A DNA stretch of 36,241 bases from Chlorokybus atmophyticus (GCA_009103225.1 RHPI01001043.1:15893-52133); one strand, 5' to 3'. Shown: positions 8,026 to 20,711, numbered from the stretch's first letter. The notes: generated from the sequence alone by a model not told the origin. A program made the numbers and translations.

Positions 8026-10515
8026 TCAAGCAGGGCTGGGCACCACATTATGGGTGTTGGGCTTCATCTCCAGGTGGACGGCAGGCATCTCCACACCATC
8101 CTCGCCGACAACTTTGCCTTGGTCATTCACTGTCATTGGCAGCGCGGGCTGGTCGTCACCAAGATCAAGCTTGGATGATCGCGCCTCCATCCGTTTGATG
8201 TACGCATCAACGCGCTTGCCAACTGTGCAAGAAAGAGTCAGAATAAAGCGCTTACCAGTAAGCAAGGGCCATGACCTGCGAAAACTTGCTTACTTGGCCA
8301 TTCCGACATGCGGAACTTCCAGAAGTTGATTCTGAAGGTGACAAATTTGCAGCAGAAGTAAGACGCAAGGCCCATGATGGCGCCGTAGGCGATGTTGTTG
8401 GTGAAGGGCATGGTGATGATGGTGAGGAAGGCCGGGATGGCCTCAGTCAGATCCATCCAATTGATTTCAATAACAGATTCCAGGAAGATGACAACCCCAA
8501 TCAGCATCAAGATGGGTCCCGTTGCTATGTCAGGAATTGGCCCAGCAAAGATGGGGGAGAAGAACACGCACAAGAAGAACAGGAGGGCGCAGACGAGAGC
8601 GGTGATCCCAGTGCGACCACCGTCTCGCACAGCAGCTGCAGACTCTACGTATGTGGTGATGGAAGAGGTGCCCAGGACGCCTCCCAGGGTGGTGCCGAGA
8701 CCGTCCGAGAGGAAGGCCCAGTTGCAGCGTGGGATCTCGCCTGTTTATTGATGTGTATCAGATATATGTTATTTTCTGGTAATGATATTGTGTTCAGTTG
8801 TACGCATTGATGCATGCAGTCACTCGCCTGTCTTCTTGTCGAGGATGCCCATCAGCTGACCCATGGAGTAGAAGGTGATGCAGCTGCCGATGAAGTCCAG
8901 GTACAGGAAGGTGATGAAGGCTGCATTCATGCACAAAGAAGAATGAGCGTCAGCGGACACGACAGCAGCAAAGCCTCACAAAAGCACACAGCACAGCATT
9001 GCCCCACCCTCCACGAGTGTCTTCGTGTTGTCGCCCCAGTGGAAGTCGAGGTTGCCAGCAGTCTCGTGGAACTTGGGTGTGCGAACAACGCTGTCGGGGG
9101 CAGTGGTATGCCAGCGGATCCACGTGATGAAGGTGGTGAAGAGGATACCAATGAGCATGGCTGCATTCACTCGGTAGAGCATGAGGAGGCCCGTAAGAAA
9201 GAGACCTGCCATAGCTAGCCAGGGACAGCGCGGGGCCCCGTTGGCATCCAGCGCGCAGATGTTGAAGTCCGGGTTGAGCTTTGTCAATGTGGGAGGCGAG
9301 TTCTGAATGATGAAACCGTTCTGCTTCACTCCCACCCACGCAATGAACACACCGATACCTGTAACGAGTCAGGAAGAAGTTCAAGGCTAGCTGGCACGTG
9401 CACATTCACCATTTATGCATGTGTAGCCATAAATATAAGCGTACCACAAGCGCCTGCCATGAGGACGGTCGTCGGGAAGAGCTTGAGCAGGACAGAACGC
9501 ATGCCAACACAAGCTATGGCAGTGAAGACAAGGCCCTCAAGGAAGACAGCCGCCAAAGCCTGCCATGGTCTATCAGTAAGAGTCTCTCACTGCGTGGTTT
9601 AACAGCGGGGGTCGTGTTCAACAGTTCACACCTGGGGATAGGGGGTCTCGTAGCAGGTCTGAGTGGGGTCGTCAGCGCAAGGGTGGGGCTTGACGACGTT
9701 GTAGACAAAATATACCTGTGGATTGATACCTGTCAGTGCGCAAGTACAACAAGTCGAAGTTGGTATACATATGTTGCAAAGCGTACGTTGGTGCCAAGCT
9801 GAACGGAGCACACCCTGCATGCGCAAACAGAGGAAAATCTGCGTTAGCGCACTGAGCTGCAAGATGGTAGCTTGCATTTGGGTTGCTGCTTACCATGGGT
9901 AGTTGCCAGCAATTGCCATGATGAGTGTTGCAAACCTGCACGCACACATGCTATCAGCCCCTGAATTGACAACGAAAGACCTTGGCACAGGGGATAAACA
10001 TCTTGCAAGCAGAGAAGCAATGGCCACGGCTACGAACCCTGTGGAGATGGCTGTCGCGAGCAAGATGTCATCCTGCCGGACACATACAACCAGTTCCCAA
10101 AGTCAGCATGCTTGTCTCTGCATTGGTTGACAAAGTGTCACATCCGGTCGCATTGCTTACCTTAGGCATGCCGGCGGCAGAGAGGATGAGAGGGTTGAGG
10201 AAAAGAATGTAAGCGCTCGTCATAAACAGCGTGAACCCCGCCCTGAGCAGCAGAGAGAAGCAGTGCCAGAATCAGTGAAAACACCACACCACATGCACAG
10301 AGGCAAGACAATGCTGTAGGGCAAACGCCTGCACAATGCTGGGCGTCCAAGAGTCAGTGCAGTTGTGCATGCGACGAGGCAAGGGGAGCAACCACAGCGA
10401 GTGCACCGCATGCATTGCACCTGAGCTCGGTGAGCCATGAGGACTTGCGCCGTCTGATCTGGAAGAAGTCGTTCAGCTTCTTCTCCGGCCCGGCCAGAAA
10501 CGCCGGCAACTTCAT
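8026..10515 (-). CDS. AzgA/AZG-family (NCS2) adenine/guanine/hypoxanthine-type nucleobase permease, multi-exon
   Basis: Spliced translation: MKLPAFLAGPEKKLNDFFQIRRRKSSWLTELR|AGFTLFMTSAYILFLNPLIL..ATAISTG|FATLIMAIAGNYPW..QALAAVFLEGLVF..GIGVFIAWVG..SDGLGTTLGGVLGTSSITTYVESAAAVRDGGRTGITA..ATGPILMLIG..AIPAFLTIITMPFTNNIAYG. The ESAA..GGRTG and PAFLTI..MPFT..IAYG motifs are typical of AzgA/PbuG. Exon 1 is 10515-10421, exon 2 is 10242-10161 and the stop is at 8026-8028. Confidence 0.92.
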
Positions 10516-12477
10516 CTCCACCACGTGACACAGACTACCAACTCCCGACAGCACCACCACCGGCGTCGCCACCAAGCAGCAACAGCCACAGCTAGTGACT
10601 CCTGCCTCAAGACCTCTTCACTGTCAGCCTTCACTGCCACAATGCAGCGTAGTTGGGCGCGGAGCTTTCAACCCGACCTGGAAAACCGCTGCCCCTGAAA
10701 TAATTGTTTCCTCGGCAGTATTACTGCCGAGGTCCTGAAAGACAACGGAATGCAGACGGGTGTAGGTAGAAGTTCCGGGGATCCGGGGCTTTTAAGGCCG
10801 TCTCTTGCGCGTTGCAAGTGGTGCGAACAGCCGGAGACCGGCCGCGCAGCCGGTGGCGCGCCGGCCGCGGGCACCTCACGTGACACAGTGTGGTCGCCCT
10901 CAGCGAGACGAGAGAGACGAGAGCCTACGTGCCGAGGTGGGAGGTGAGGGCATGATTTCGTCCCTGCGAGTCTAATGTTGATTATTACGGTGGAGCATCA
11001 GCGGTCCTAATTGTGGTATGACATGTCTCGTAGTCCGTCATGAGTCATGACTCTTGAGTCCTCTTGCGCTGCATTTGAGCAGTTGGTCTCTGCCTGTGTC
11101 GTGTGGCGGGGCTTCTTCGGGGCGCGGAAGGACGGTCCTTGATGAAAGCAAGCAAGTCCGGTAAAGAGTCCAGGCCACCCTCCATGTAAGCACACCTGTT
11201 AATGTGTCCCTTGCTGTAATACCTGTGATACCAATAGTACCTGCAAGCCTTGCAATGCAAGCCTTGTGAGTACTATTGCAGAGCACACATGTTCCTCCAA
11301 CTCAGATGTTTCGTGATTATTAACATGTAATGTGACTGCAGTCTCGTTACTTTACTGGTACCAGCATTGGTATAAGTAAAGTAGTAGTGTTAATTTTTCG
11401 TATACAGCATTACATCAATGGCGAGCGCACACTCAATACGTTTCACGCAATCGGTAACATTATTATATGTGCGGCGATTCCTGCGCAAGTGAGAGTTTTG
11501 GATGATTGAACCGAACGCAGCACCAGTAGCATGCCTACGCAATACAATGTGAGTTCCTTGTACATATTATACAAAGTTTGCATTATTAACCAATTGCGAC
11601 ATAGATTGTATGTATATCCTTGTTCATGCTATTATAACAGTGCAAATGCAATGCTATGTGTACATGCTGAAACATCCGTGCAGTCGGCAAGCATGGGGTA
11701 CACTGTATAGGCAATGTGCTTTTGGCTTGCTCACTTATTCACATCCATGATGTAATTGCAGGTGCAGCACGATCATACGCTACAGGTGTGGCCGCTGCGG
11801 CCATGGCCACACCCACACCCACACGAGCAAGTTGGCCGTGTGGGCGACCGCTTATGTGGTGTAGCAATTGCATGCAGCATTCACGTGTTCATTCAGTCGG
11901 TCTATGCATCTTGCCATGTGTTAATGGCTCCATCAGTTACTGCATCATTCACTTAGCATTGTTGGCAAATGCTAAACTGTTTGGTGTACAAAACAACCAT
12001 GCGAATCTATCCAATACATGTACCTACTTCGGGGTTTGCCATGTGCAACTTTTGCACGTTATGTATGTATACATGGATTCGCAAAATAAGACATGTACAT
12101 GTGTAAGCAAAGTTGTTTCGCCTTACCAACTGAACGGCCAATTCATAGCCCCACTTTACAGAGGACTTGTGAAGCCCTATGAAAGGCTCCGTCATATCTA
12201 ATTGTACTCCCGAGAGTGCAGAGCTCGGCACTCGCAAGACACAACATATATGAGCATACACCACTATTTATATATGAATCGCTACTCAGCTCATCGACAC
12301 CGAGGTTGTGTATGTGTTGTTTGTACCTATGTAGTTTTCCTGTAGATATCAGTTGGATCTGCTAATTGAAGGATAGTATATTATACGTCTAGCAATTGTT
12401 GCTTGCTGGTGGAATTTGTACAAGCCACAAGCATCAACAGCATGTACACGGCCGTTGTAAGTGCCAATGGCCATCTC

Positions 12478-19600: not shown

Positions 19601-20711
19601 GGCCATATGTCTGACTTCCAGTTATGCAGGTGGCTGCAACAGCTGTGTTGTGCATCAACATGCAAAAGGAGTTCCTTGCTGAGGGCGGCTATGGCAGCAC
19701 CCTTGGCAATGATCACACGAAACTGTTGCCTGCTGTTGCAAAAGTCCATGCCTTGCAGGTAAGTATAGGCAAATGCCCTTGTATATGTCCGTGTCAACCA
19801 CATATCATATCTCTCCCACCCCGCGTAGGAGTTGGCGCGACAGTATGGGCTTCCTGTCATGCACATCTTAGAGGCGCATCTGCCAGATCTGTCGGACTGC
19901 CCACCGTCCAAGCTTGCAAGAGGCAACCGCGGGCAGTGCATTGGAGATCAGGTCAGAGCACCAGGAAGCAGCAATGCATCTGAACTGAACTTTGCTGCAT
20001 GTGGCGGAAGACCCAGCCACTCGTGCTGGCTGCAGGGTCTTCTTGGCCGGTTGCTCATCCGAGGGGAGCCAGGAAACTCCCTCGTGGAGGAGTGCTCTGC
20101 CCTTGAAACGGAAGCGGTATGCATAGTCCGTTTGATGCACATGTTATATGTACTGCTTATGCGTGCCTGTAGTAGAAGTGCAGAGTCCTCATGCTGTCTT
20201 AAGCAGGTGCTATACAAGCCTGGCAAAGGGGCGTTTTTCAATAGTGGCTTGACAGAGCTGCTGGAGTACGTAAACGTGCATGCCGCTGGTATATGACGGC
20301 ACACCAAACACACCTAACACACCACTTCGGCACAGGCTGCATGGCATCACTCACCTCATCATAGCTGGCGTCACAACCGAGGTTGGCTGCCAGACCACAC
20401 TCCGCGAAGCCAATGATCGCGGCTATGAAGCGCTGCTGGTTGAAGACTGCACGGAGAGCTATCTTCCTGAGTAAGTGTACACTGCATTTGCTGTGGAAGA
20501 CTTCGCATAAACGAGTTGTTACCATAAAAATTTACAATCTTGCCTCAGACTCAAGGAGGTGACGCTCAACATGATTCGCGCGCAAGGCGCTATCGTTGCG
20601 CGGACTGCAACGCTGGACTGTTTGCGCGCTGCCCTTGCGACTACTTCTCAGGCACAAGGTGACTCTAATAACATATTGGCGGCGCAGAGCCCGCCTACTA
20701 TTTGTGCGTGA
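16632..20711 (+). CDS. Gene B: paralogous tri-domain fusion (AH-C-like + BiuH-like + TrtA-like); TrtA-like domain lacks the canonical catalytic Asp and Cys; ~17 exons
   Basis: Domain 1: [14 protein letters not shown]..|[25 protein letters not shown]|[31 protein letters not shown]. Domain 2: [17 protein letters not shown]|[37 protein letters not shown]|[27 protein letters not shown]|[35 protein letters not shown]|GGVFG. Domain 3: LPFEYDFP|[45 protein letters not shown]|[49 protein letters not shown]. The domain 1-2 linker is obscured by the poly-C fill. Confidence 0.88.
17549..18010. other. 461-nt poly-C run ending in n; most likely an assembly or gap-fill artefact within an intron of gene B
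   Basis: Pure homopolymer terminated by an ambiguous base. The paralogous position in gene A is a short ordinary linker. Confidence 0.85.

Follow-up and report, generated by a model that had tools for sequence, protein, structure and literature searches.

Does a permease of a purine-carrier family that lies beside two fused hydrolase genes form part of one nitrogen-acquisition pathway with them, or is it a chance neighbour? The question is raised by a locus of Chlorokybus atmophyticus, an early-diverging streptophyte alga, within a window (the whole stretch of DNA analysed, 36,241 nucleotides; GCA_009103225.1, RHPI01001043.1:15893-52133) of eukaryotic DNA with many introns and ~52% G+C. Three genes occupy positions 8026–20711, an interval that runs exactly from the stop codon of the permease gene to that of gene B: an AzgA/AZG-like NCS2 permease (8026–10515, minus strand), gene A (12478–16074, minus strand) and gene B (16584–20711, plus strand), the latter two being paralogues that each encode an allophanate-hydrolase C-terminal (AH_C) domain at the N-terminus, followed by a biuret hydrolase (BiuH)-type and lastly a triuret hydrolase (TrtA)-type domain. 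Taken together, the evidence below indicates that this is probably a real nitrogen-scavenging gene cluster, older than the chlorophyte/streptophyte split and built from a divergent AzgA-family permease and a BiuH/TrtA enzyme. The first-pass annotation of this DNA had described an AzgA-family permease ~2 kb downstream of gene A on the same strand, next to a divergent A/B pair, and this layout is borne out: the spacer between the gene A stop and the permease start measures 1.96 kb (10516–12477; its open reading frames (ORFs) have no family match, and it presumably holds the permease promoter), and genes A and B stand head-to-head with their ATGs 509 bp apart, across a region (16075–16583) presumed to act as a bidirectional promoter.

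The strongest evidence comes from other algae. When the genomic positions of homologous enzyme genes were looked up, permease and enzyme were found linked in at least eleven other green-algal genomes or contigs (twelve with the window), ten of which are named here, and unlinked in three algae. In Chlamydomonas reinhardtii, the permease gene Cre10.g448450 and the enzyme gene Cre10.g448500 are divergent and 1.25 kb apart; in Edaphochlamys, Scenedesmus, Monoraphidium, Nannochloris, Micractinium tetrahymenae, Klebsormidium and a picoalgal metagenome contig (ENA), a Xan_ur_permease gene lies <5 kb from a BiuH-type gene; in Hariotina, adjacency follows from consecutive gene numbers; and in Spirogloea a tandem TrtA-like gene, an AH_C–BiuH gene and the permease fall within 19 kb, with coordinates read from gene names. 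No other neighbour is common to the linked algal loci examined. The physical clustering of uptake and catabolism genes that the first-pass annotation had proposed, naming synteny in related algae as a check, thus finds strong support, the more so as all linked permeases belong to a single clade (see below). These genomes share ancestry and are not independent trials, and the claim is confined to green algae, since no AzgA neighbour lies beside the enzyme gene of the dinoflagellate Durusdinium. In Symbiochloris irregularis, the BiuH–TrtA gene (contig L007, 10001–15038, plus strand) is instead head-to-head with a gene (3830–9231, minus strand) for allophanate hydrolase, which follows next in the pathway; one exon of this gene matches TIGR02713 with E 7e-35. 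Other neighbours were considered as pathway members and dropped: the M20 peptidase merged with the permease model in Scenedesmus is dipeptidase-like and not an allantoate amidohydrolase, and neither the cupin next to the Nannochloris gene nor the Micractinium amidase had a useful match.

The window permease corresponds to public model P0298 (jgi/Chlat1/1830), a protein of 511 amino acids that maps exactly onto 11 exons within 8029–10515 (on the minus strand, exons 1–6 at 10420–10515, 10161–10241, 10034–10072, 9893–9931, 9784–9813 and 9632–9712, and exons 7–11 at 9443–9559, 9009–9356, 8859–8921, 8295–8738 and 8029–8220, followed by the stop codon). Its stop-free exon frames match Pfam Xan_ur_permease (PF00860; E 1.5e-15 on one exon), and among solved structures it has relatives only in Arabidopsis AZG1 (E 2.7e-62) and AZG2 (E 1.3e-53), the AZG1 structure 8IRL also being the best solved relative of a single exon (E 5e-33). 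The linked permeases of the other algae are orthologous to it, with exon identities of about 35–87%, and a search with the Nannochloris permease recovered a tight green-algal group (E < 1e-100) that includes P0298. In the tree, all linked permeases fall into one green-algal clade, monophyletic with 100% support and set on a long stem (1.6 changes per column); plant AZG proteins, fungal AzgA and the second, canonical-type AzgA paralogues that some algae carry form a clade apart. An algal ‘AZG-like’ clade has been named in a 2026 preprint, from which function and linkage are absent.

With the AzgA/AZG purine permeases (Aspergillus AzgA; Arabidopsis AZG1, 8IRL, and AZG2, 9J12), the algal permease shares family membership, fold-level homology and the core purine-contact residues. 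However, land-plant AZG1/AZG2, fungal AzgA and bacterial proteins are only 30–37% identical to the linked group, which, beyond its separate long-stem clade, is set apart by two changes that become apparent when residues are mapped by alignment onto AZG2 numbering (PMC11992111). In transmembrane helix 3 (TM3), the otherwise invariant PGMG (the AZG2 M138 motif) is VQLG in every member of the linked clade; in TM8, every member has Gly at the position of AZG1 Asp393, and TTG is replaced by S-(C/S/A)-I. Judged by these residues, the pocket of the permease is purine-like yet distinct, and the suggestion in the first-pass annotation that it might carry urate, triuret or biuret is to be read in this light.

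For the enzyme genes, domain-level results rest on public models and exon-by-exon searches. The exons of gene A match AH_C (PF21986) and two separate isochorismatase domains (Pfam and NCBIfam), and PF21986 is also on record for the public models of gene B (P0001) and gene A (P0154). The best solved matches of the middle domain of gene A are the biuret hydrolases 5BK6 and 6AZO (Rhizobium and Rhodococcus; E 3e-24 and 2e-20, from exons), whereas those of its last domain are the TrtA structures 6XIX and 6XJ4 (E 8e-17). On the BiuH equivalog model NF050097, which has a cut-off of 370 bits, this last domain scores 202 bits, similar to a cyanobacterial TrtA; a cyanobacterial BiuH reaches 417.3 bits for comparison. 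Tassoulas et al. tie the choice between biuret and triuret to a few residues (PMC7948467). In the first hydrolase domain of both A and B, these are of BiuH type: an Asp two residues before the Cys, Tyr/Tyr at +11/+17 from the catalytic Asp, and Gln and Val at +40 and +43 from the Cys. Indeed, the BiuH Asp-Lys-Cys triad and the second-shell residues (the Asp before the Cys, Tyr/Tyr, Gln215 and Val218) are present in A, B and all algal homologues examined. The second hydrolase domain of gene A carries Glu, Phe/Asn, Gln and Ile at the corresponding positions, as in TrtA, with a complete Asp24-Lys129-Cys162 triad and Glu160, Phe35, Asn41, Gln202 and Ile205 all matched. The residue types of both domains hold in every chlorophyte homologue examined, and in the tree the domains separate into BiuH and TrtA clades that both include bacterial counterparts (99% support). 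The two domains of gene A can be assigned on these grounds as BiuH-type and catalytically complete TrtA-type hydrolases, with biuret and triuret hydrolysis as their predicted activities. BiuH–TrtA-type fusions also occur beyond green algae, in the dinoflagellates Effrenium voratum (P0185, P0186) and Durusdinium (P0190) and the pelagophyte Aureoumbra (P0197); some of these dinoflagellate and pelagophyte fusions reach ~1,000 amino acids, and their second domains lie on very long branches.

Gene A is transcribed, since spliced contigs of RNA-like run X1 cross six of its introns (12805–13962, minus strand) with GT..AG ends. One of their junctions, 13441|13532, corrects public model P0154, which keeps intron sequence at this point. 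The same model starts inside an intron and lacks the true first exon: the ATG lies at 16074, and exon 1 (15938–16074) ends in a split Lys codon, with exon 2 beginning near 15471. The exon 1 donor and exon 2 acceptor restore ‘...AKFVK/ECRTAP...’, parallel to gene B. For the latter, public model P0001 (jgi/Chlat1/1832; 644 amino acids, 17 exons) maps exactly onto 16584–20708 plus the stop codon and has the same architecture as gene A. Within it, a poly-C run of 461 nt followed by a single N (17549–18010) is treated by the public model as an intron between the AH_C and BiuH parts; the run occupies the linker between these domains, after ‘...GWRAYCNA’, and is probably an assembly artefact or gap filler.

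Although gene B retains an intact BiuH-type domain, its TrtA-like domain has Asn in place of the catalytic Asp and Gly in place of the Cys, with a Cys one residue later. On these residues, gene B cannot be a normal triuret hydrolase. The description of A and B as duplicated triuret/biuret-degrading fusions in the first-pass annotation therefore stands in part: both are BiuH–TrtA fusions, but the triuret-degrading half of gene B is without its catalytic Asp and Cys. Proteins A and B are 54% identical overall; their first hydrolase domains are sisters with 72% identity and 99% support, and the second domain of B, on a long branch, is likewise sister to that of A. These sister relationships point to a head-to-head duplication in the Chlorokybus lineage that was followed by loss of normal TrtA chemistry in B. 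Similarity between the two genes at the DNA level (73–83%) is confined to exons, so the duplication is not recent. That the altered TrtA domain of gene B might be an old pseudo-enzyme held in common with Spirogloea is contradicted by the tree, which pairs it with the domain of gene A. Spirogloea muscicola has its own tandem TrtA-like/TrtA proteins (P0005, P0152 and P0153), in which the first domain carries Lys for Asp and Gly for Cys; by its residues, this is a second, independent dead TrtA-like domain kept beside an active one.

How far the algal arrangement resembles known systems was assessed against 80 bacterial trtA-like loci, 45 of them with full flanks. None of the 80 holds an AzgA permease. 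By contrast, a Bmp/PnrA-type ABC binding protein is encoded in 40 of the 45 loci with full flanks, which suggests that a dedicated purine/nucleoside-type importer is a regular part of the pathway; by analogy, the green-algal AzgA-like carrier would take the place of this bacterial importer. A full allophanate hydrolase lies next to or near trtA in 27 of the 80 loci. A cyanobacterial operon, in Elainella saxicola (L015, 3010–11063), encodes in order Bmp, two ABC permeases, a formamidase (578.8 bits), BiuH, an ABC ATPase, TrtA and a stand-alone AH_C protein; L035 and L048 are further loci of this kind. The formamidase is a hint that formamide may be formed from the natural substrate of this pathway. 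A BiuH–TrtA-like fusion also exists in Paenibacillus sp. 598K (P0183; L011, 10001–11581), in whose first domain the nucleophile is replaced by Gly; it is flanked by a Bmp-ABC system plus CN_hydrolase on one side and by a PucR-type regulator of purine catabolism on the other. The bacterial triuret/biuret clusters of Herbaspirillum and nitrifiers (trtA, trtB, biuH and atzF with an ABC importer) have in common with the algal loci the same two hydrolases and their specificity residues, an AH_C-type partner and a transporter gene beside the enzymes. They differ in that the algal genes lie in the nucleus, contain many introns and encode a single fused polypeptide, that the algal transporter is an AzgA-family secondary carrier rather than a Bmp/NupABC ABC system, and that the Chlorokybus window is without a full allophanate hydrolase.

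The recurrent AH_C partner suggests a role for the N-terminal domain of genes A and B. In Klebsormidium and Spirogloea, among others, BiuH carries a fused AH_C that has no amidase domain, and the AH_C–BiuH–TrtA triple fusion is found in Chlorokybus and in one metagenome protein (P0155); of the named genomes, only that of Chlorokybus unites the three domains in one protein, and it encodes two such proteins. The domains of chlorophyte BiuH–TrtA proteins (for example, Cre10.g448500) and of streptophyte AH_C–BiuH proteins are orthologous to those of Chlorokybus and occur in the same order. In three cyanobacteria among the 80 bacterial loci, a stand-alone AH_C gene encoding 130–161 amino acids lies beside trtA and/or biuH, and the stand-alone cyanobacterial AH_C proteins score 183–189 bits against a profile of the algal domains. 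TrtB, the carboxybiuret decarboxylase, was reportedly defined by Aukema et al. in 2020. Its gene trtB co-occurs with trtA according to the TrtA paper (PMC7948467), and no model in NCBIfam names TrtB.

The following sequence of events would link these genes. The permease may import a nitrogen-rich planar compound, either a purine base or an oxidized-purine or ureide product, with triuret and biuret as candidates. Inside the cell, triuret would be deaminated by the TrtA-type domain of gene A to carboxybiuret, which would lose CO2 either spontaneously or aided by the AH_C domain; the BiuH-type domain would then deaminate biuret to allophanate, and enzymes encoded elsewhere would convert allophanate to urea or ammonia. 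In Chlorokybus, the enzyme gene would have been duplicated head-to-head, copy B keeping its BiuH domain and losing the TrtA Asp and Cys. Permease and enzyme genes would presumably be co-regulated, as the first-pass annotation had also suggested. A bolder version, which we put forward tentatively, is that the green-algal AZG-like clade is not a purine carrier but an importer of triuret, biuret or another oxidized-purine ureide, its AzgA scaffold refitted by VQLG in TM3 and Gly in TM8 and kept beside the enzyme for roughly a billion years.

Several observations weigh against the interpretation as an ancient scavenging cluster, or against parts of it. Permease and enzyme gene are on different contigs in Myrmecia and Symbiochloris, and also in Chlamydomonas eustigma, there judged from the sizes of the contigs alone; where linkage exists, orientation and spacing vary by lineage, chlorophyte pairs being mostly divergent and those of streptophyte algae tandem. 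The middle domain of gene A, taken as one piece, scores 368.8 bits on the BiuH equivalog model, 1.2 bits below the cut-off. The amidase of allophanate hydrolase was not found in the window by tblastn with the bacterial protein, and the equation of AH_C with TrtB is an analogy, drawn from an AH_C gene standing where trtB is expected. The single, tiny RNA-like run, which did cover gene A, yielded no contig on the permease. Finally, the linked clade keeps the purine-contact residues Tyr56, Asp345, Thr395, Val397 and Glu398, with Tyr at Phe396, so that the permease may be an ordinary purine carrier, and in a study of Chlamydomonas the AZG proteins are proposed to move guanine out of storage vacuoles (PMC12541418).

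This last group of observations leads to an alternative in which the pair is co-regulated and not coupled by substrate: a plain adenine, guanine or hypoxanthine carrier of the plasma membrane or vacuole would be linked, through a shared promoter or chromatin responding to nitrogen status, to enzymes that clear internal triuret and biuret derived from urate oxidation. Triuret is indeed thought to arise in this way (PMC7948467), and two Chlamydomonas AZG/XUV genes, proposed guanine/xanthine carriers and one of them presumably Cre10.g448450, are reported to be induced 590- to 2,550-fold without nitrogen, which places them among the transcripts that respond most strongly to its lack (PMC12541418); the induction is given for AZG genes and not for the enzyme gene. 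This induction also counts in favour of the scavenging cluster. The chlorophyte pairs, mostly divergent and 0.7–1.4 kb apart, would suit a shared promoter, as the retained core of purine-binding residues would suit a purine substrate; however, the streptophyte-algal genes are tandem, hence without a shared promoter, and the TM3 and TM8 changes of the linked clade are absent from every canonical AzgA examined. Given also that some algae hold a second, canonical-type AzgA paralogue besides, and that the dedicated importer of bacterial trtA/biuH operons suggests an external substrate, this alternative is considered rather unlikely. A change of substrate on the enzyme side is a good deal less probable. 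Here the hydrolases would have substrates other than triuret and biuret, namely further acyl-urea or guanidino compounds (for example, guanylurea, formylurea or carboxyguanidine), and the cluster would belong to another scavenging route; GuuH is a member of this family that arose from BiuH (PMC12623156), the cyanobacterial operon encodes a formamidase, and NCBIfam offers no curated family model for the TrtA-type domain. Against this, all residues tied to the choice between biuret and triuret match their respective types, and the shortfall of the middle domain on the BiuH equivalog model is very small.

That the two genes lie together only as a neutral remnant of ancestral gene order, without any function behind it, is the least probable of these explanations and is regarded as very improbable. 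The relatedness of the linked genomes would allow it, as would the loss of linkage at least twice without obvious consequence, but the pair persists in Chlorophyceae, Trebouxiophyceae, Chlorokybophyceae, Klebsormidiophyceae and Zygnematophyceae while its other neighbours, and even its orientation, have changed. The chance of two given genes lying within two genes of each other is estimated at ~3 in 10,000 per genome, and where the permease has gone from the side of the enzyme gene in Symbiochloris, it is a pathway enzyme, allophanate hydrolase, that replaces it. A functional cluster for nitrogen scavenging remains the preferred interpretation.

Outside the three genes, the window contains no recognizable further pathway gene, as assessed by Pfam scans of ORFs and by tblastn; when bacterial allophanate hydrolase, formamidase and Bmp proteins served as tblastn queries, the AH_C parts of A and B were the sole regions matched. 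A Pfam scan of ten long ORFs located elsewhere in the window returned either transposon proteins (gag, protease/reverse transcriptase and DDE_1) or nothing. The cluster is flanked by a DDE_1 transposase ORF (27654–28670, minus strand) and by gag and protease/reverse transcriptase of a long terminal repeat retrotransposon (32909–36241, plus strand), and an assembly gap of 439 N (4345–4783) lies in a region rich in repeats. Within the 509-bp A/B intergenic region, GGN/CCN-rich stretches at 16100–16140 and 16339–16397 form imperfect inverted repeats.

The view in the first-pass annotation that such clustering is unusual in algal genomes needs to be tempered. Green algae have other clusters in which a transporter lies beside the enzymes for one nitrogen source, namely the nitrate cluster (NIA1/NII1/NRT2/NAR2) and the DUR genes for urea. 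The permease–BiuH/TrtA pair differs from these in its components, its presumed substrate and its reach into streptophyte algae; it would represent a third kind of transporter-plus-enzyme nitrogen cluster in green algae, and one that extends to the streptophyte lineage leading to land plants. With urea fertilizer, large quantities of biuret and triuret pass into soils and waters, and urate oxidation is a further source of both; to our knowledge, how eukaryotic algae use them has hardly been studied at all. Searches of the literature on the Chlamydomonas gene identifiers, or on biuret or triuret together with algae, returned no relevant paper and none describing the permease–enzyme linkage, and this probable old nitrogen-scavenging cluster has no earlier description that could be found; the TrtA paper mentions trtA in ‘some fungi and phytoplankton’ in one sentence (PMC7948467). 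The conserved importer–enzyme pair offers a concrete hypothesis that is genetically testable in Chlamydomonas, where Cre10.g448450 and Cre10.g448500 are neighbours, and suggests a likely role for a permease clade so far named only by phylogeny. If the permease does import triuret or biuret, green algae would be using both compounds as true nitrogen sources in nature.

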